A stretch of 63,929 nt of DNA, counting the filler, from Hyphochytrium catenoides (Eukaryota > Protista > Hyphochytriomycota), in NCBI GenBank assembly GCA_900088475.1. It is 10 parts of 10 records of this genome, joined end to end, with 100 filler letters (N's around TTAATTAATTAA, not from the genome) between each part and the next. Parts side by side here need not be neighbours in the genome. Positions count along the whole stretch, not along the records: positions 33,572 to 60,953 come from FLMG01001643.1; 9 more parts are not named here. One strand, 5' to 3'. Within the stretch, counting starts at the first letter, position 1; the number at the start of each line of letters is the position of its first letter. The notes beneath the pieces are model-generated. The model was not told the origin of the DNA. It saw only the letters and a program-made list of their open reading frames with translations, and did no database searches. The position numbers were made by a program, and so were the translations under genes. Below, in pieces: positions 36,042 through 60,953 of the stretch.

Positions 36042-36674
36042 TCACCGCGAGATGCAGAAGATATCACTATCTTTATACAGCGAGCTATCATCGACGGCCG
36101 ATATTCTGATATAATAACCGTCCCCAATGAGCATGCCCCAAGGCACTCGCGAGTAGAGGAACCGTCCGCAGTTGCTGGTGCTCTTGGCCACAATTGTTGT
36201 TGCTCGTGAGCCTTTTCTTAGCAGTTCAATACGCACGTCCTGCACACTGGCATCGTCTAGCTGCCACTCCACTACTGCTGGGGATCCTCGCTGCCACTTG
36301 GTCTGCGCAGACGGCTGAGAGATGATATTCGCTACTGAATATGCATTGGCTCTACCCCCAGGGTTGTTGGCTGTGCCGACAACAAGAGAGCAAGATGCCG
36401 AGTTGTCCATGCTTGCCAGGACTCTGGAGCTGTAAGGGCTATTAGCTTCGTTGTCGCTAATTTTTGAGTTCTTTCCTATAACAGGATTCTGCGCCTTGAC
36501 GCCCTTGCTGCTGCTTCCTAGGGATGCCGCAAGGGAAATCTTGGCGTTGAACGCCTGTGAGTTGGCAGCTGTTGCGTCTAGCTGCTTAATCTGCAAAAAC
36601 TTGGTCTCAATGAGGCACGAGCGCCCTCCTTCACTTGGAACTGACGGGCGATGAGAGATAACCGTGCGAGACAT
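36042..36674 (-). CDS. 210-aa protein with a C-terminal Ig-like domain of Kre9/Knh1 (Ser-Thr-rich GPI family) type
   Basis: IISQPSAQTKWQRGSPAVVEW...VRIELL...NCGRF...VPWGM..GDGYYIRI...DSDIFCI follows the P-x4-W-x2-G...W...N.G...P...Y.I.I...S..F.I pattern. No signal peptide is visible. Confidence 0.7.
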   Translation of the reverse strand: MSRTVISHRPSVPSEGGRSCLIETKFLQIKQLDATAANSQAFNAKISLAASLGSSSKGVKAQNPVIGKNSKISDNEANSPYSSRVLASMDNSASCSLVVGTANNPGGRANAYSVANIISQPSAQTKWQRGSPAVVEWQLDDASVQDVRIELLRKGSRATTIVAKSTSNCGRFLYSRVPWGMLIGDGYYIRISAVDDSSLYKDSDIFCISR

Positions 36675-40404: not shown

Positions 40405-43400
40405 CTAAGTCCCTCGCCCTTCAATGCTCATCTTTATAGATCTAGACTCTTTCTTCTTCGATAACTTGCGTTGATCCTGCAGACCAACGACATGAAAGAA
40501 GAGACACGAGGATTGAGAAACAGCCCATACCGCCAGCCAATGAATAGTTGGACACGAGAGAAGGGGAAAGACAGTGGGAGAGAGAAAGAAACATAGAAAG
40601 GGAGAGAGAGAACATTGAGAGAGTCTATCGACAATTTAGCCAGAGAGGGAGATCAACACCGACGAACCTGCATCTTCTTGAGAAGTTTCCCTTTCTTGGA
40701 CTCTGGATCTACCTTCTTCGTCTTCAGGTGGTCTAAACTTGGGTTCTCAGGTCGAGAAATGAAGTCCAACGGACGAGCCTGAGGAACTCGAGCACGGATG
40801 GACGATTCTCCTTTCTGCGTATATACGATAAGAACGATAGCAAGAGCAAAGAGGCAAGTCCAAGGAGCAGTAGCGCGAAGGGTTGGCGTTGACAAGCCGA
40901 CAGATAGATACCGCGAGAAAAATAGAGAAGATTTAGTCAAAACCCATGAAGAGCACATCGTTAACTTTGCTATAGGCATACAGCTAGGGACTGGAAGCCG
41001 GCTGATGTCGTCCAAAAAGAGAGTCAAGAGTAGAATGAGGGTATATCATATAGACAGACCATAGATTGAGGAGCACAAGCAATCTGATCCTACAGCCTCC
41101 CACTCTCACCTTGTTGTCCTGAGGCCTCCCAAACAGTGGGTCGCTTCTTGTCTCTGCTCCTTCTCTAGGCGAGGCGGAGGGCCTCCTCTGCATTGCTCTA
41201 AGGCGGGCTAATCTCTCCTGATTCATCTCTCCTGACTTGCTATAGTCTGCAGACTTGTCGAAGACCGTCCGGCTCCACTTTTCTATTAATCGTTGGCAGA
41301 GCGCTTTGTTCTCACTTGTCTGAGGATTATATTTGGGCAAAAAATAGAGAGCGGAGTTGAGATCTTAGCCTTCTCTGTATACACAGCCTAGAGACCCTTG
41401 TTAAGTGCCTCTCCATGAGCTTCCTTCTTCTCCTACTTCCACATTGTCAGCCCTCTATTACGGCTGTTGGAACTGCGCATTGCCTTGTTACTTTTTCTGC
41501 TTAGGAGGACTCCGACGTACCTCCTGCGGGTGTTTCCAGAGTGCCATGACTACCTTGCCCATCCCACTCCTCTTGAGATGTTCCTTGTCAACTGAGCAAA
41601 CATGAGGACAGACGAAGTGTCAACCACTCGACTGACTTTGGTACCGAGGAGTATGATATATGAAAAGATCTAACAAGCGGGCGCCTCGCCCCAAGACAAG
41701 ACACGAGAGTGTGACAGAGGATAGCATTAGAATGTATCCTAAAGGGCCATCAAGAGTAACAAAGAGCCATGGGCGTTCTCCTACTTGGTAGCTTGCCCAT
41801 GCTCTCAAGGATTGCCGTGCGGACGCTAAGGTTCGGGAGAGTTCCATCCTCCATCGGCTGAATCCACAGCTTCAACACCTAAACCGGCCGGTTAAAAAGG
41901 GCAGCGTGGAAACAGGAGGTACGCGAGAAGACTAGTGAAAGGAGCTATTAGATAGCCGAGCTGGACAGAGGCAGATCATTGAAGACGGAGCTGAAAATTA
42001 AGAAGGTTTCTTACCCCAAGCAAGTCGTAATCCAGAAACATTTGCTGCAATTCTTTCTTTGAGAGATAGTGCTTCACGCGATCCAGCAGCTTTATCTATG
42101 AACATCGATGATGTGAGGGAATAAGAGGCCGCAAGAGGGGAGTCTCCACTTAGCTCAAGGGCATTTGACAAAAAGGCATTCACATCTTGGAAGTAAAGAA
42201 GGTAAAGCTAAGAGAGAACGCAGAGAGAGAGAGTCACACAGAGGACAAGAGACGTACGAAGGGAGACAAAGAGGAGGAGAGAGAGAGTTAGGAATGACAG
42301 GAATAGCATCGAGCAGCAAAGGAATAACTGTCTTCGGTGGACTTCTAGTAGAGAGCTTTACCTTATGGATAGCTGCCTTCCCCTGCTTCAGTGCTTCTAT
42401 GTCTGCCTGAGCTGTCCTCTGGATAAGGTGGAGGAAATCCTGAGGCGTTGATGTGAGGCTTGCTTCTGCTCTTCTCTTTTTCCTCTAATCCTAGTCTTAA
42501 AAGTGTGCCCTTGCTAATACTCAGGCTCTTCCTCGTCCATGGATGTCTTTCTTCAACTTTAATACTAGACAACATGTAGAGCTGCACCTGCTCCTTACCT
42601 GCGCAATCTGGTCCTGGACATCAGCGCTGAGTCTCTCCGTCAGCTTTCCTCTACTCCTCTTAGGCTTCAGAGCCGCGACAGCTCTATCAAAAGGGTTGGA
42701 CATGTCCAGACCGCCCTTCTTCCCTTTCCTCTCTGCGTCCTCTTCGTCATCCGAGTACTCGTCAGGCCGCTCGTCATTGAAGACCTTATGGCCCTCATGT
42801 CAGCAAAATGTTTGTCTTTATCCCCCCTCCTTTCTCTCCCTCACCTGTTCCTTATTGAACTCCTCATCCAGACCTAACTCCTTGAGGTTCTCGTGAGTAG
42901 TAGTTAAGGAGCCTGAGTCTTGAACGGTAGCACTTCTAAAGAAGGCAGCATGGAAAGAACACGAGGAAAATTGGCTATGGAGAAGGATATGTCATCTTTG
43001 TCAATAAAGTCGTCATCGTCCTTTGTCCGCTTCACCTCATCCCCAGAGTCATATTCGTCGCCTGAGCCCTTGGCCCCTGCCAAACAACATGTATACATAA
43101 ATATAGAGTAAAGCAACGCTAGCAGCTTTGCTCGCATGAGAGATAGAGATGGGGACAAGCTTCTATAGCTGAGTGAGCTATAGAATATAGTACGGATGGC
43201 ATCTAGAGCACGACACGATTCAGCTTCACAAGAGGCACCCTTGAGGGGCAGAAAGAAGTCTAACTCCAAGCTGACAACAAGAAACGGGTGCGACTTACAG
43301 AGGTGAGAGACGTACGCCCCTTCATGAATCTCTCACCTTTAGCCTTCTTGTTCGCTCCTTCACTGTCACTGCCATCGCTAGCCGCTCTCGCCCTCTTCTT

Positions 43401-45581: not shown

Positions 45582-46869
45582 CTACCCTCGATACCAAGGG
45601 TTTTTCAGCTTGTAGGCACTCTCGTAGAAGTAGTAGAACATGACAAATGCAGCTATGGCACCCAAGGCAGCATTAGTCCTGACAGTGCTATCCTTGATGG
45701 TAGGGCAGTATAGCACTAAAGTAATGACGGCAGAAGCAGCCAACACGTTCAGCGCACCAACGTAAAGTCCCTCAAACACAAATTGTGATCTGCTTTGAGG
45801 GTGGAAGATTGATATTCTCTTGGAAGCGTAGTCCTGTGGACCAAAGAAAGGGTACATAGAGGACCGCTTAGACATATACAGTCGCATACTCTTGCTGAGA
45901 GCTCTTCAATGACTATTAAGAGTTCTCCGCTTTTCGAAGGAGGCAAAGGTTGAAAAACACGCTTTTGCAGGGACAGACATCGGAGCTTATTAACGGTCAA
46001 AGTAGCTGGCAAACGACCCAACTCAAGGTCAGGGTAACACTGAAGGATTGTCTAAAGCACGTGCGAAGGGACAGTGAGTAGGTGAAAGCTCAGAGAGTCA
46101 TTTGTACCTGGTGGAACATGGGCGGGTTGCGAATAATGCAGTAGACCATTCCGGAGATAGACATCCAGTAAAGAAAAAAGCTAGCGGCCACCCAGACTAC
46201 TTTCGTCCGAGCAAGTCCCAAGAAGAAGTCGAAGTTGCTGATGACAGCATAGCCTAAACCACCCAGGCTAACAAGGACAAGCACTATGAGGCCAATTTTT
46301 GCCAAAGGAGACCGATAGATAGGAACGGTAACCCCTGCCTTGTCCATTACAAAGTCTGCGAGATAGTCCGCATCAGTACCTCGGCGGTAGAGATCAAACT
46401 TATCCTCTTCGAAGAGCTCCACCTTCTCTAGTGCTCTTTGATCATCACTACCGTCATTGGTAGGCTTGACGTAATAGAGGAGAGGGGCCATTGTCAGGCC
46501 ATACTTCTTGAAGGCTCGCTGGTTAAACTTGTATTGGGCCCTCAGAAAGAAAATTGGTTTCTCAGAGCTCTCAGACGTTTGGGTCAACCGATAGGAATAA
46601 GCCAGGCGATCAAACTCCGGCTCCGCCTCGCTGCACTTGGGGCAGACTGCTTTATCGTGGGTGAATAACACGAATAAATGATAAGGCCTAGGGGCACCAA
46701 AGACAAGGGTTTCGTAGCGGTCGTCCGAGATGTTGATCACATCCCCTTGCCTAGTTTGGAGCTTTTTGAGCTCCTCGAGCCGTTTGTCTCCTGTTTTGCC
46801 AGAGGCAAAGATCGTGTTGGACGTGGCAAGCACCACAAAGAGCCATACACAGAGACGGCGCAGCCCCAT
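45582..46869 (-). CDS. OST3: Oligosaccharyltransferase subunit OST3/OST6 (MAGT1/TUSC3 family)
   Basis: Signal peptide, thioredoxin-like domain (PRPYHLFVLFT...CPKC), TM helices, SISGMVYCIIRNPP, then an exon with SQFVFEG and K..WY at the end. Confidence 0.92.
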
Positions 46870-48820
46870 CTTATTGAGGTTTCTGAGGCAGGACGAGGAT
46901 CAATGATTAGGGTTGCTGCCAAGTTACCTCGCGTTAACAGGTTAGTCCCTCCAAGGATCCGCCTCTGCTCAGCTGTTGGACTTGAGCTCGCTCATTGGAA
47001 TGCTGTTCATGAAAGAAGATTGAGAGAGAGATTGAGATCCGCAGACTGATCTTCTACGAAGTACAAGCAGCAAGCGAAGATTCAGGGTCCGGTAACGCTT
47101 ACTTTTGCCATCTCCGAGGGGACGCGTGAGATGCCAATCTTTCAGAAAGGTTTCAGACAGAAACCTACGAAAGAAACGCGCCCTCGCCAAGGCAGTCATA
47201 ATACTGCTTGTGGGGTTGTGGCCTGTCAACAGAGACAATTGAAAGGGCATCATTCCTGAAGGGCAAGGGCTTTTGGACAATAATCTTGTAAACGGTCTTT
47301 GAGGACTGTGAGATCGTAAATTTACGGATTAGCCTCAAGAATTAGTAGTTGGCTGTGGACTGATCTGTGGTCAAAATTGGAGGAGGGAGATAATATTATA
47401 CGGTTTCCAGATTGTGCAAAGTCGGTGCTTTTGAAATATTGGAATGTCAGTCCTATGACCAGCCCTTTCCGTTTTTGATCTTTTTTTTACTTGCGCAATA
47501 TGGTCGGGCTTGTTCTACAATATTCGCATTCTCCTTCCATGAATATATCCTGGAAAATTAGTAGCTTGTTGAATCTTCAAGCAGCTGAGCCTAATAAAGG
47601 TTGTGGGCATAGCGGCACTATGCTATGTGTAATAAAGGATTAAGAAAGATATGTGCCCTTTTATCGTCGCATTAGTGCAGGAAAGGGCATCTAACCTTCC
47701 CTCTCACACATGAAGTACGTGCGCTACCAGACGATAGACGGGACCTCGTGGGAGAGACAGAGTTGGTCTGAGAGAGACAGAGCAGAGATATATATATTGC
47801 CTTTGAAAGAAACAACAGTAAGGAAGAGACAGAGCGGAGTGATAGAGGAAATAGGAGCGAGATAAGCAGGCGTCATAATAAAGAGTGAGTGCGGCGAGGT
47901 CGGACACGGCGTCAGTGGTCATCAGCCTGCTTCCTTTCGTCCCTCTCTCTCTNNNNNNNNNNNNNNNNNNNNNNNNNNNNNNNNNNNNNNNNNNNNNNNN
48001 NNNNNNNNNNNNNNNNNNNNNNNNNNNNNNNNNNNNNNNTCTCTTTCGCTCTTTCTCCTTTCGCACTGGGCCATTGGCCGCTCTGTCACGGGTCTCTCGT
48101 CCAGGTGCTCCCTCCTCCCTCCCGCAATCCCTTCCTGCACCTCCATCCTGGCGCCATCTCTTGCTCTTCTACTTTCCTCTTGCAGAGAGTGTGAGGGAGA
48201 GAGAACGAACGAGCGAGAGGACAGAAGAGAGAGAGAGAGACGGAGGGGGAGAGAGAGAGGAACGGACAGAGAGAGTAAGGATGATACAAGAGGGGTTATG
48301 GGAGAGAACAGGCAAGAGAAAGCACGCCAAGGATTGTCAAATCTGCAGCACCGCTCCGGCTTTGATAGATACTCCTGCACATTCTCCACCGGGCGGACAG
48401 TTCTTTTGTTTGCTGCTTCGTCCTTTGTATCTATAAACTTCCAACCTCTGTCGGTCGTCCGCCCTCTCACCACTTGGTTTGAAGCCTAGCTTCTCTGTTC
48501 GATGAGGCCGGCCAGGTTAGGTCTTAAGGCTGTTATTGGGGCACTCGCCCAACCATTGACCGACAGAGTCACGCTTGGTTCCAAACGAGGCTAGCTGCAG
48601 ACAACAAAATCGCCGCAGGGTCATAGACGTGAGCTGGCGCCGCGCATCTATCTGATTCTCCTGCTGTGCTGCTGTCCTCAGTTGGTGATAATAGCCGTCT
48701 CATCTCAGAGGAGGAAAGTACAACTTACCTCGCGGTACATAATAAAACAAGACCCCATAAACGAAAGAGGTCTTTTTAACTGCCACTGTCAAGCTTTTCT
48801 CTGCAGCAGTGACAGGCAAG

Positions 48821-51030
48821 ATGGTGGCAGATAGCGACGTTGCTGCTCACACCGCCTCCTCGCCTCGGAAGGACGCAGTAGACACCGCCATCCAGAAAAT
48901 GTCGGTTGAGGAAGGCTCCATCGAGGGCAGTACAAACCCCGGACAACCAGGCAACCCTGATAAACTGTCGCACAATGTCGTCTCTCTACCCTTCTCCTGG
49001 AATCAAACGGCTGTCAATGAAAGCCAGACAGAGACCGACTTGCAGCGCCTCCGTATATCGAATGCGGTCCGGGGCAGGAACCCTGGGTCTCTCAACACCA
49101 TGTTGAAGCTTAACACCAGTAGCAGTAAAGATAACCTGTCAATCTTGCCGCGGTTGGACGAGGCAATCTTTGATGTCTTTCTTCCCAGTCCTAACCCTTC
49201 GGCACCTGAGGTTGAGGTGGCTTCCCGCTCTAACAATGTGAAGGTCTCTGGATGGCTGGTCAAGCGCGGCCACACCCGGCAGAACTTCAAAAGGCGCTTC
49301 TTTGTCCTCTGTGGGTCTATCCTCGAGTACTTCGAGGACAACACGTGTTCAAAGAGAAGAGGAGGGGTAGATATCTCGGGAGATGATGTGTCTTTGACTG
49401 TGCTAGATAACAATGGGACACTTTTGATGAAGGGAGGCTATGAGCTTCTGTTCTACGCCTGTGACGGCAAAGACCAGAAAAGGTGGATCTCGGCCCTTCA
49501 TAAGGTTAACCATGACATCAAACTCATGAGGAGAAGAAGGAGCGGCGACTCTTCCCAAGAGGCAGACAGTGTCCGGTGCGGCTGGCTCACAAAGAGAGGA
49601 CATCTAGTCAAAAGCTATCAGCGCCGCTGGTTCGTTCTAAAGAACCAGAACCTGGAGTACTTCCTGGACCCAAACTGTGTGACAAAGAAGGGAGAAGTCC
49701 ACTTGTCAGGGGACGGCGTCTCTGTGTCCTTTGTCGACATCAGGGAGACCAAAAATAGCTTCTCTTTCGGTATCTTCAGGAACGATGAGTGCGTGCTCAT
49801 GTGCTATGCCGACAGCCAGGAAGAGAGGGAAGAGTGGGTCGCTGCTCTTCGTCCCAATAACTGTCAAACGAGAAGCTTTGGAGACTCAGAGGGAGATGAG
49901 GAGGACTTGACAGCCAGCCCTGTAGGCTCTCCTTCCCGCAGCTCAGAAGGAGACAAGAACTTCGTGGATGACGACAAGAGTCGGGAGATTCGCAAAGAAA
50001 TTCGTTCTCTTCTAGCTTCTCCCTATGAACCAGAGGGCAAGACTTTGTAAGTCCTCAGTCCTCCACATCTTGCACTTAACACTGTTACTATCTTAGGTTG
50101 AGTATTCACGGGCATTGGCCAATTCTCCTATGCTTTGGTCTGCCTCTCTCTTCGCTAGTTTCTTTTCCTCGACAACCTAGCCTCTCACCTCTCTCTCGTA
50201 CCAGTGCAAGTAGTATGCCTTTTTCTAAGCTTCTCTCTCCCTACTTTTGCAGACAAACCTTTGTCAAGGACTTCCTAGCTGACCATCGAAGGAAAGGGCT
50301 CGAGCTGATCTCTAATTTTGTTAGAAGTCTCAGCGACTTTGTGACTGAGTCTCGATTGAAGGGGCTCAAGCGGGAGGGCAAAGAAGAACTAGTCACAGTC
50401 GCAGACAGAGAGACCATTAAAGGAATCGCTATCCAAGAGGTAGAGGCAGCCGTCTTCTATCCTCTGCAGGCTATTATCTATCGGAAACTCTCCGCAAAAG
50501 GGAAAGCTGGGAAAAGTGTAGTCTTTCAGGAAAAGAGGAGCTTCTTAAGGCAGAAGCCCCAAGCGTACTTTGAGATAGAGGAGAGCAAGACGTCTCCAAC
50601 AGATTGGAAGTCGGTGGTTCTCAAATTCAACGAAATCAGTAGGTTTTCCAAGCCTTCATCTAAGAAGGCGGCCTTAGTGGCGGCAGCCAATGAGATCTAC
50701 GCTTGTTACAAAAGAGAGCACCCTTGTGAGGACGCTTACAGAGAAGGCGGAGAAGCGTCGTTTCTTGGAGGTGATGACTTCGTTCCCATCTTCATCTTCT
50801 CTCTTCTGCGGAGTGACATTGAGGATCTTCTGACGCTCAAGCGGATGCTCGTTGCCCTGAATGTAACAAGAGCAGGGGAGGACGAGTACTACCTGGCCTG
50901 CTTAGAAATGGCCGTAGAGTTTATATCAACCTTTGACCTTGCAAGAGAAGGTTTGCCTAGTATTCCAGAGATTCCCAGGTTGATTCAGCAGGAGATCGAG
51001 AAAATGAACAATTCGCCCAGAACCAACTAG
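48821..51030 (+). CDS. Tandem-PH plus VPS9-domain protein (putative Rab5-family GEF)
   Basis: Two PH domains (GWLVKRGH...FKRRFFVL...W; GWLTKRGH...YQRRWFVL...W). One intron at 50047-50252. VPS9 motifs GGDDFVPIFIF and GEDEYYL. Confidence 0.88.
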
Positions 51031-57087: not shown

Positions 57088-60000
57088 TTAGATCCCTCTT
57101 TGCTGCATCTTCAGCCAAGTGTTCTGAGCTTGGCACTCCAGTGCTAGCAGCTCCCCCACCACAGGCTGCATGTTGAGAATTCTTTCTGTCATTCCCTCAT
57201 CGACCGCCTCGGTAGCGGAATAGCCAAAAGCAAGTCCTACACAGAAAGAGACGTCAGACGGCGGTTGTACGCTAGCTCCTTGAGCCACTGCTTCTTCACT
57301 CCTTTTCTTCCTGGTTGGCCGATGTTCCTACCTTGTGCCACTGCTGGAGGCAAGTCCAGGCTCTGGCCGATGGCATGCAGTTTCTTTCCCAGCCGAACCT
57401 CTATCTGCTCCAGATATTTTCCTTCATTGTACCTATAGATATGTCACGATGAGAGTGAGACAACTACATTCATTATAATTCTTTAGGTTTAAGATGAGAG
57501 GCGAGGGGATAGTTGCTAAAAAGATGGTAGCTGCTGTACGAAGCTACTGAACAACAAGAGTAACATGAGACCCAAGAGCTTGTTAGCGGAGGACGTCCTA
57601 CCATATCGTGCAGCCTCCTTCCTCTAGCAGCTTTCTGTTGACACAACCTCTACCTTTACTGGGACACTTGTGGAACCAAACCTTTTCGCGATGACCTTGA
57701 CGCCATGGAGAAGGATGAGGAGAAAGTGAGTCAGTTGCGGAATAGGCTGCGGGTTATAGCAAGACCATTGGAGTATGCTGCCCATCTCCATATAGGCAAA
57801 ACGGCCAACAAGGTACCTGGCGCGGCAAGAATGGATATGGCCAATCCTCTCCGCTCCGCTCGACCCACTCTTCCGACGCGGTGGATGTATTCATCTGGCA
57901 AGGAGGGCAGGGTCATGTTAACGACGTACGGAAGGCCCTAGACAGGTGAGGAGTCAGTACGCACCAATGGGAAGACCTAAGGCCCAGACAGAGCGTCACA
58001 GAGCCTCTTTAGAAGACAGAAACGTGCTCTGTAGATGATTTGAAAGTGCCATACAAGCAAGAAATTTCGTTAAGTCAGGCAGTGAGCAAAGTCCAATAGA
58101 GAGTGGTGACGTTAGAGCACCTGTATGTCGATGCCGCGCGCTGCCACGTCTGTACAAATGAGGAAGCGTACTTCTCCGTCTTTGAACGCCTGAAGGTTCC
58201 CCCTTCTCTCCTCCATCGATCTCTTCCCAGCCAGGACGCAGCAGGAGTATGGATTCTCCTTTCCTGTCTCACTCTACAGTGACAAGGAGAACATAGCGCC
58301 GGCAGATGGTCAAAGCGGGGGCTGAAGCGCTGCCGGGCAGGAAAGAAGAAGAGCAGGAGAAAAGACAGGACAAAGATGTGACGAACCTTGATCCTGAACC
58401 TCTTCCCTCCTCCAATATCTGTCAGATATCTCTCCAGAAGATCGCAATCAAGGTTGGTCCGACAGAAGACGAGACACTGCTGCATCTCAAGCTTATCTGC
58501 TAGAGCCACTAACACCTACGATGAAGGATGACGGTGTTCACGGGTGATATCGAGTCATATGTTAGTGCCAAAGTGGGCGCTTTGTCCTGAGCGAACAGCG
58601 AGCAAGTATCACATGAGCTACCTGAGGTTTGAGACGCTTGATCCTCTCTGAGAGTTCTTCATGTTCTTGAGCAGACTCTTGCCAGCCTGATCTCCCTACC
58701 TTCACCTCGTGATGCAGCTGATGAACGCCATCGGTCCCAGGAGTCTGTCCGGGTAGCTACGGGTAAAGGACATACAAAGAGAGGACAGTAGTGAGAGAGT
58801 GGAGTTTGAGCGATGGGCAGGGGTTTCTCTGTCCATAGTTCGTCCTGCCATTGTAGCTCGAACACAATCCCGTCTCTCACGCTAGCTCACTTTAATGCGT
58901 CGTCTGCACCTATAACCCACGCCAGTTTACCTTCCACTCGTCATGTTCGAGCTTTGGGTCAACCGTCACCCGAACGTGCTCAACAGTGTCCGGCACAAAG
59001 TCTGCTCCTTTGAGATCCACCCAGATCGGATGCTGACAGAGGATCGACGAGAGTTCCTTTACCTCTTTTGAGTGCAAGGTAGCTGAGAAGAGGCACACCT
59101 GTGGCAAAGAAGTGAATCAATATGAGCGTCCGACTCGGTCATTCTTCCCAGGCCAGCCTTATCCGCAGACTCCTTGGTGTGACGCTCTCGTTTTCGGACA
59201 CGCTCTCTCCCTATCTCTTTTCTTCGGACCCAAGTATGTTCCTGCCGTTGCTGTCCTTCGCCCTATCCACTTCGCAAACAAGCTTCTATTGGCTTTATGG
59301 TGACCTGATCCCTAATGTACGCTGCGGCTCCTCCCAATGCCTATCGTTCTTCTTCTGTCGCCATTCATTCCTCTATGTACCTGCAGGCGGTTGACTCCCA
59401 CCGCAGACTGTCTCAGCTCTGCAACCTTGGTGTAGATCTTCAGGACAGGTTCGCGCATCCCGGGCTCGGCCAATCTGTCGGCCTAGGAAAGGGAGGAGGA
59501 AGAAGACTGAAGTCAGGAAGTGTTTGCTTAATTATCCGACACCATTTCTCGACATCTTCTCTCGTGGAGAACTAATCAGCTCAGATCTCTCGATAGCCGT
59601 CAAGTTGCTCGTTCTCCCTAACTTAGCTTCCTTCAAACCAGAAGAGACTCTCCCTTCTTCTCTTCTCTCTTTTCGTCTTTGCTTGCACACGCGCTGTGTC
59701 TCCAAGTACCTCGTCAAGCACCAAGAACTGTACAGCTGACAATGCAACTTTTTCATTCTCAATAAGATCTAACAGCCTCGCAGGTGTTGCGACGATGACG
59801 TCCACGCCTCCCTGTAGAATCCTAGACTATAAAGATGCGTCAGAGAGAGATGCGGACAGAAGAGATACAGACAAAAAGAGAGAGAGAAAGGGAGAAAATA
59901 AAGCATCAGATTACGGTTTGTCAAGGAGCGCTGAACAGGACAAGGTGGGCTTTGTAACGTGACTTGTTAAGTTCGCAGCTGCCGCCACACGATAGGCATA

Positions 60001-60109
60001 GAAGTATACGCCCAATGGGACCCGGAAGAGATGAAAGAGGATGAGCAACCAATTGAAGAGAGAGAGAGAAAGAGAGGGAAGGAGGAAAAAGGAGAGAGAG
60101 ACACAGAGG

Positions 60110-60144
<35 letters not shown>

Positions 60145-60734
60145 GAGGGGTGAGCGCGAGAGAGAAAGAGTCCGGAAAGATGTACAGCCCTGAGCTCCAG
60201 GAAAGTTGACGATCGTCCGGGTCCCTACCTGCTGCTTGCCGTCTACTCCGCCCACGAATGTGCCGCATAGAATGGAGGGACTCTGCAAGTGTTTCTTGTA
60301 CGCCTCTAAATTTCCCTGAACTTGCTCCGCTAAGTCGCGCGCTGGCTCCAGAATAATGGCACGCGGCGTCCTACGGGGCGCTGAGGATGGGCGGGCTGCA
60401 AGTCAAAGACACAGGGTCAGAGAAAGCAGATAGACAAAGAAAGAGAAGTGAAAGCTGGCTGAAGAGAGAGAAAGAGAGAGAGAGAGAAAGAGAGCAACAC
60501 ACAGACAGGTAGGAGACGAGGATACGGACAAAAGACATGAGAGAAGGCGAGAGAGAGAGAGAAACTGATGACAGGAAAGAGGATAGGAGAGAAGAATATG
60601 AGGTAAGAGCCAGTACCGCCTCTCTTCCTTGTCCCATCTGCGCCTTCTCTCTCTCCCTGCGCCTCTGCCTCCAACAGAGTCTCGCTGATGATCTGAAGGA
60701 TTGGCAAACAGAACGCCGCAGTCTTTCCTGAGCC
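57088..60734 (-). CDS. DDX1: DEAD-box helicase DDX1 (5' end cut by the scaffold edge; no SPRY insert)
   Basis: [34 protein letters not shown]...PIWVDLKG...[51 protein letters not shown]...GGCTIWYNE. SATLH, WVDLKG and KVW.H.C..GC..W are DDX1-specific. Confidence 0.94.
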
Positions 60735-60953
60735 CTGCAGAAGGATAAGGGAGGACCGAGGAGCGTGAGAGATGCGAGGAGAAAAGAGACAATGATAGGG
60801 AAGAGACAAGAGAGAGAGAGGCAGGCAGAGACGGACAGAGGGAGCGAAAGCGTGCCGAAGAGAGAGACACCCAGAGAAGGACAGAAGAAAGGTGACGGCA
60901 CGAACGTGCTCGTAGCATATATGTTCAGCAGCAGAAGAGAAACAGAAGAGAGC

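Follow-up and report, generated by a model that had tools for sequence, protein, structure and literature searches.

Minor (U12-type) introns are known in several stramenopiles. Two AT-AC introns and one GT-AG intron of this class are described in Phytophthora (PMC2846911), dozens in Saprolegnia, and hundreds, mostly AT-AC and unusually often in phase 0, in Blastocystis (PMC10639083); U4atac is reported in Achlya (PMC11347168). For Ochrophyta there is no evidence of minor introns (PMC10639083). In the literature searched, no paper tying hyphochytrids to U12 splicing was found. Here we analyse a stretch of 63,929 nucleotides (nt) from Hyphochytrium catenoides (assembly GCA_900088475.1), below called the window, and in it intron 5 of the IWS1/Spn1 gene, a candidate U12-type intron with AT-AC ends. 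The gene lies in the 27.4-kb piece taken from FLMG01001643.1 (positions 33,572 to 60,953).

The closest described systems are the AT-AC introns of oomycetes, for example in the peptidyl-prolyl isomerase gene of Phytophthora sojae and P. ramorum. Intron 5 belongs to the same class and has the same ATATCCTT...TCCTTAAC...AC consensus; it comes from the same broad lineage (Pseudofungi/Gyrista stramenopiles), and in both cases minor introns are rare beside the many GT-AG ones (PMC2846911, PMC10639083). However, the gene here is IWS1, and the IWS1 genes examined in Saprolegniales and in a Pythium-like organism have no intron at this site. IWS1 is also not among the minor-intron genes named in the literature passages on oomycete U12 introns. 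The minor introns of Blastocystis, another stramenopile, are mostly AT-AC and unusually often in phase 0, and intron 5 is a phase-0 AT-AC intron too, but they are about 39-42 nt long (PMC10639083), compared to 98 nt here. No Blastocystis sequence was found among the matches of the IWS1 or OST3 searches.

Splice signals of intron 5

Intron 5 occupies positions 42990..42893 on the minus strand (98 nt, phase 0, 44% GC). Its signals are as follows, with junctions marked by a caret.

42982..42990, minus strand: 5' splice site ATATCCTTC, presumed pairing site of U11 and then of U6atac
42910-42903, minus strand: branch-point sequence TCCTTAAC, which fits TCCTTRAY; presumed pairing site of the U12 small nuclear RNA (snRNA)
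42893..42895, minus strand: 3' splice site CAC^, an AC terminus of the AT-AC subtype
42890, minus strand: second in-frame 3' site GAG^ (GAG^AAC), 3 nt downstream of CAC^

Read on the minus strand across both junctions, the sequence is ...GACAAAGATGAC^ATATCCTTCTCC...GGCTCCTTAACTACTACTCAC^GAGAACCTCAAG..., with flanking codons GAC AAA GAT GAC before ATATCCTTCTCC and GAG AAC CTC AAG after GGCTCCTTAACTACTACTCAC. Intron positions +1 to +8 (42990-42983) read ATATCCTT and agree with RTATCCTT, which is the 5' splice-site rule of the minor class (PMC2846911). The branch-point sequence is separated from the 3' end of the intron by 10 nt, TACTACTCAC, which puts the branch adenosine (42904/42905) at 11-12 nt from the final base of the intron, 42893, within the usual range of approximately 10-15 nt. 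There is no polypyrimidine tract: neither the tail TACTACTCAC nor the sequence TTCAAGACTCAGGC upstream of it is a pyrimidine run. Excision of the 98 nt joins the exons at GAC^GAG, keeps the frame and yields ...FIDKDD-ENLKEL..., whereas the unspliced frame (open reading frame (ORF) 42904..43269) ends at the TAA within TCCTTAAC. The 5' site, the branch site, the spacing and the frame-restoring AT...AC ends are thus all those of a U12-type AT-AC intron. All this agrees with the original prediction, which had described the motifs, the CAC end, the in-frame junction FIDKDD^ENLKEL and the stop inside the branch site.

Either motif alone is not unexpected: mean chance numbers are 1.4 for RTATCCTT and 0.76 for TCCTTAAC. 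Each has exactly one match in the window, and the two matches are on the same strand, 72 nt apart and in the expected order. The ordered triple of the 5' site, the branch site and YAC or YAG at 6-13 nt past the branch site occurred in 25 of 1500 simulated 27-kb sequences (1.7%; first-order Markov model), a figure that leaves aside the further demands that the triple be on the coding strand, be flanked by two conserved exons and keep the frame. In a scan of the 27-kb piece with relaxed 5' and branch-site patterns, intron 5 was the sole candidate with the full U12-type consensus. The other U12-like candidates of that scan were all weak and were rejected.

Since IWS1 is conserved, the upstream exon is conserved, and translation without splicing would end within the branch site, the intron must be removed. 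We conclude, with a probability of about 0.87, that intron 5 of IWS1/Spn1 is a functional U12-dependent (minor-class) AT-AC intron. Its removal would imply that the organism keeps a working minor spliceosome. What was observed in support of this reading is that the motifs are present with the right spacing, that excision restores the frame, that the exons are colinear with homologues, and that the 12 other introns of this gene are, by contrast, GT-AG.

The splicing itself and the snRNAs involved are predicted, and the mechanism is taken from the established model of minor splicing. The U11/U12 di-snRNP (small nuclear ribonucleoprotein) would bind the 5' site ATATCCTT through U11 and the branch site TCCTTAAC through U12, jointly. 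U4atac/U6atac.U5 would join next, and at the 5' site U6atac would displace U11. This site would then come under attack by the branch adenosine, 11-12 nt before the 3' end, and the exons would be joined at GAC^GAG to encode ...FIDKDD-ENLKEL....

Gene model and homologues

On the minus strand, the gene begins with the ATG at approximately 44057, ends with the stop at 40405 and contains 14 exons and 13 introns.

44057-44042, minus strand: exon 1, from frame and splice signals, weaker homology
43862-43788, minus strand: exon 2, from frame and splice signals, weaker homology
43661-43540, minus strand: exon 3, from frame and splice signals, weaker homology
43460-43337, minus strand: exon 4, from frame and splice signals, weaker homology
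43076-42991, minus strand: exon 5, encodes (G)AKGSGDEYDSGDEVKRTKDDDDFIDKDD, with the acidic GDEYDSG...RTKDDDDFID block of stramenopile IWS1
42892-42845, minus strand: exon 6, a 48-nt micro-exon of 16 codons, encodes ENLKELGLDEEFNKEQ
42785..42844, minus strand: intron 6, GT-AG, 60 nt, at ..KEQ^.F.DERP, a position common to Aphanomyces invadans and Saprolegnia diclina
42784-42599, minus strand: exon 7, encodes VFNDERPDEY...DQIAQ
42439-42362, minus strand: exon 8
42095-42015, minus strand: exon 9
41878-41785, minus strand: exon 10
41591-41521, minus strand: exon 11
41319-41110, minus strand: exon 12, 70 amino acids
40814-40668, minus strand: exon 13
40476-40405, minus strand: exon 14

The coding sequence is 1410 nt long including the stop codon, and it is a multiple of three only if intron 5 loses 98 or 101 nt. 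The remaining 12 introns (60-295 nt) are all GT-AG with G^GTRAG-like donors; intron 5 is the only AT-AC one.

The exons were translated singly, and every search and identity count likewise took one exon at a time. Ten exons treated in this way are 43-48% identical to oomycete IWS1 proteins bearing PF08711 (Med26/TFIIS_N). PF08711 itself scored below the cut-off against one exon alone (E=0.014), since the C-terminal TFIIS-N-like helical domain is spread across three exons. As in the stramenopile orthologues, the acidic N-terminal region contains the GDEYDSG...DDDFID block, and the C-terminal tail is ...MSIEGRG. Judging from these similarities the gene is IWS1/Spn1, as had been proposed.

The boundaries of intron 5 were compared with a set of 137 proteins, mostly IWS1/Spn1 with PF08711, collected with exon 12 as query and by a word search that started from P0005, a Pythium-like protein. 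Using tblastn, exon 5 gave more than 40 high-scoring segment pairs with stramenopile IWS1 proteins (63-83% identity), and every one of them ends exactly at 42991 (...DDDDFIDKDD). These alignments fix the 5' boundary at 42991^42990. The region 42991-43074 translates to AKGSGDEYDSGDEVKRTKDDDDFIDKDD and contains GD(E/S)YDSG..(V).RTK(D/E)DDDFID, the best conserved element in the N-terminal half of stramenopile IWS1. On the other side, the micro-exon is supported by the protein P0107, aligned as ...EDEELVKEYYKEQ^IFDDERPD and also given as ...FIDVEGEDEELVKEYYKEQ^IFDDERPD, and by diatom IWS1 sequences with ...ALKELYAEQ.FDDERPD. The start of exon 7, VFNDERPDEY, matches the.F.DERP of nearly all homologues. 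Exons 6 and 7 are colinear with the IWS1 proteins of Pythium, Saprolegnia, diatoms and others. When the AC site is used and the Glu codon is kept, DD-E-N aligns without gaps to DD-D-L/N of the homologues.

Alternative explanations

The same 5' and branch sites could serve a U12-type AT-AG intron of 101 nt, with the 3' AG at 42891-42890 and the product ...FIDKDD-NLKEL..., one Glu shorter. This variant is in frame, its distance of 14-15 nt between the branch adenosine and the 3' site is still inside the usual 10-15 nt, and non-canonical termini of U12 introns are known (PMC10639083). However, CAC is the first candidate 3' site past the branch point, and where the Glu would be lost, the homologues retain an acidic residue. 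Moreover, AT 5' ends overwhelmingly pair with AC 3' ends, and we consider the 101-nt variant unlikely. Another possibility is that the major spliceosome excises a larger intron and the U12-like motifs are coincidental or relics.

43037^43036 (approximately) to 42890^42889, minus strand: GT-AG pair with donor GAG^GTGAAG and acceptor CACGAG^AAC, 147 nt, in frame

The TTAAC within the branch motif also suits the U2 branch consensus YTNAY, with an AG 14 nt later, and a gene finder restricted to GT-AG introns would pick this pair. However, the excised segment would include VKRTKDDDDFIDKDD(E), the most conserved block of the region (V.RTKDDDDFID) in all stramenopile IWS1 proteins compared; being 63-83% identical to homologues, it is coding. 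The GTGAAG donor is also weaker than the other donors of the gene, and the motif triple is improbable by chance. Excision of the 147 nt as the main form was rejected, as it would delete the conserved VKRTKDDDDFIDKDD, and this explanation of the locus is very improbable, although the pair could be used in a minor alternative isoform. Presence of FIDKDDENLKEL in a peptide or cDNA would contradict this excision. The original prediction warned about GT-AG-only gene finders: with them, IWS1 would be either truncated or deprived of its most conserved acidic motif.

Finally, there could be no functional intron at all, the locus being a pseudogene, a misassembly, or a truncated gene with a retained intron. 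Indeed, the assembly is a scaffolded draft, and a run of 87 N's at 47953-48039 marks a scaffold gap. On the other hand, this run is 5 kb away, none of the 14 exons is broken or out of frame, their signals are canonical, the stop is a proper one, and conservation spans 10 exons on both sides of intron 5. This possibility is hardly credible.

Several observations weigh against a U12-type AT-AC intron here. Minor introns usually disfavour phase 0, which is the phase of intron 5. The protein collections searched contained no near-identical protein or protein of a close relative. No U12-type intron was found at this position in any IWS1 orthologue examined. In metagenomes, the pattern DDFID-x(2-3) with RTATCCTT after it matched 24 loci, none of them IWS1, close to the 20 or so chance matches expected by a rough estimate. 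An Rfam scan of the 27.4-kb piece found no snRNA, which is uninformative for the genome since such genes are few per genome; it gave only three sub-threshold matches resembling microRNAs, in CT/GA-rich low-complexity DNA.

Lineage and age of the intron

Summed over ten exons, the IWS1 protein shows 43-48% identity with oomycetes, against 33-37% with brown algae and diatoms and 28-30% with a liverwort and a fish. Between Saprolegniales and Peronosporales, identity over the same columns is 57-60%. In a neighbour-joining tree built from the summed counts, the window is a sister to all oomycete sequences (a single-gene tree without support values). By these identities and this tree, the host seems to branch as a sister to the crown oomycetes, outside Saprolegniales and Peronosporales, the evidence for this being weak. 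On this placement it may be a hyphochytrid or else a bigyromonad, Pirsonia diadema (PMC13524835) being one candidate of the latter kind. Exon 12 (70 amino acids) had nine weak matches and no self match among 1.84 billion representative proteins, and neither the OST3 search nor the search with the Pythium-like IWS1 P0005 returned a near-identical protein. An unnamed clade of intronless metagenome IWS1 genes (P0003, P0007, P0047-P0049; ENA/Logan; L003) branches between the window and the named oomycetes; it may represent uncultured early-diverging oomycete-like lineages.

Five of the 13 intron positions, all of them GT-AG introns, are exactly common to the IWS1 gene of Aphanomyces invadans (L006): after ..KEQ, after ..IAQ or ..LVQ, after ..IHK or ..FEK, after ..LLG or ..LLE, and after ..KLP or ..RLP. 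One more matches S. diclina (L007).

42785-42844, minus strand: intron matching A. invadans
42440-42598, minus strand: intron matching A. invadans
42096-42361, minus strand: intron matching A. invadans
41879-42014, minus strand: intron matching A. invadans
41592-41784, minus strand: intron matching A. invadans
41320-41520, minus strand: intron 11, matching one in S. diclina, before T[S/P]ENK

Ectocarpus IWS1 has no more than one or two positions in common with this gene. This pattern of introns supports an oomycete-lineage origin of the window.

No intron was found at the site of intron 5 in A. invadans, S. diclina, the Pythium-like metagenome gene, the diatom Thalassiosira profunda or the liverwort Calypogeia. 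The Aphanomyces and Saprolegnia genes have both flanking introns and none at FID.DD^; the Pythium-like and T. profunda genes are intronless. Brown-algal IWS1 genes have a phase-0 intron in the same motif, FIDD[A/T]^DD, which aligns one codon upstream of FIDKDD^E. However, it is a U2-type GT-AG intron (GTGGGT...CTTAG) of approximately 1.4 kb, and its position is not identical.

L004:1910-3345: GT-AG intron of IWS1 in Ectocarpus sp. 6
L008, after position 1972: GT-AG intron of IWS1 in Hapterophycus canaliculatus

Brown algae are reported to have lost the minor spliceosome machinery (bioRxiv 10.1101/2024.02.19.579948), and in nematodes a U12 intron is described as having changed to U2 through a shift of the splice sites by a few codons (PMC2846911). 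Given the nematode precedent, a common origin of the brown-algal intron and intron 5 followed by U12-to-U2 conversion in brown algae is a possible hypothesis. The brown-algal intron may have arisen by minor-to-major conversion together with a shift of the splice sites, or independently, and it provides a small testable case of possible conversion. A more specific scenario is tentative and rather doubtful: the host would be a deep pseudofungal stramenopile (hyphochytrid- or bigyromonad-like) in which minor splicing is unreported, and the intron would come from the common ancestor of ochrophytes and pseudofungi, with conversion to U2 in brown algae by a one-codon shift after loss of the minor spliceosome, and deletion in crown oomycetes and diatoms.

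Intron 5 may serve as a homology-anchored marker of minor-spliceosome retention in a lineage related to oomycetes. It would add a data point to the patchy map of minor splicing in stramenopiles, where it is present in oomycetes and Blastocystis and absent in ochrophytes. As minor splicing is documented in oomycetes, a minor intron in their sister is expected by simple parsimony. The suggestion that the intron matters for its lineage was overstated: the host groups with the oomycete lineage, from which both minor introns and minor snRNAs have been described (PMC10639083, PMC2846911, PMC11347168), and with minor splicing already established in the closest relatives known, the general picture is unchanged.

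Other genes of the 27.4-kb piece

The 27.4-kb piece contains roughly one gene per 3 kb, with introns mostly of 60-300 nt. The following features were noted beside IWS1.

46090-46869, minus strand: single-ORF OST3/OST6 gene (oligosaccharyltransferase subunit or Mg transporter-like), PF04756, E=7e-41
48809-51030, plus strand: adjacent long ORFs with two PH domains (48809-50050) and a VPS9 Rab5-GEF (guanine nucleotide exchange factor) domain (50098-51030)
36042-36674, minus strand: ORF of 210 amino acids whose C-terminal end carries a Kre9/KNH-like N-terminal Ig-like domain (PF10342, E=2e-5, narrowly above the cut-off)
57700-60800 (approximately), minus strand: multi-exon DEAD-box helicase gene, with DEAD and Helicase_C fragments at 59623-59805 and 57731-57916

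The best named matches of OST3/OST6 are all from Peronosporales, with approximately 34% identity in Phytophthora; an unnamed Logan protein (P0010) is 54% identical. The ORFs at 48809-51030 are probably parts of a single PH-PH-VPS9 gene, separated by a short intron. IWS1 models fused to PH or PAP2 parts are found in Pythium oligandrum (P0023), Peronospora effusa (P0035), Achlya hypogyna (P0040) and Thraustotheca clavata (P0009), and these are probably neighbouring genes merged in annotation. In a check for microsynteny, the PH part fused to IWS1 of P. oligandrum matched the PH gene of the window weakly (23% identity). The DEAD-box helicase gene is situated in CT/GA-rich low-complexity DNA (approximately 59900-60900), which is the source of the microRNA-like Rfam matches at 60537-60672.

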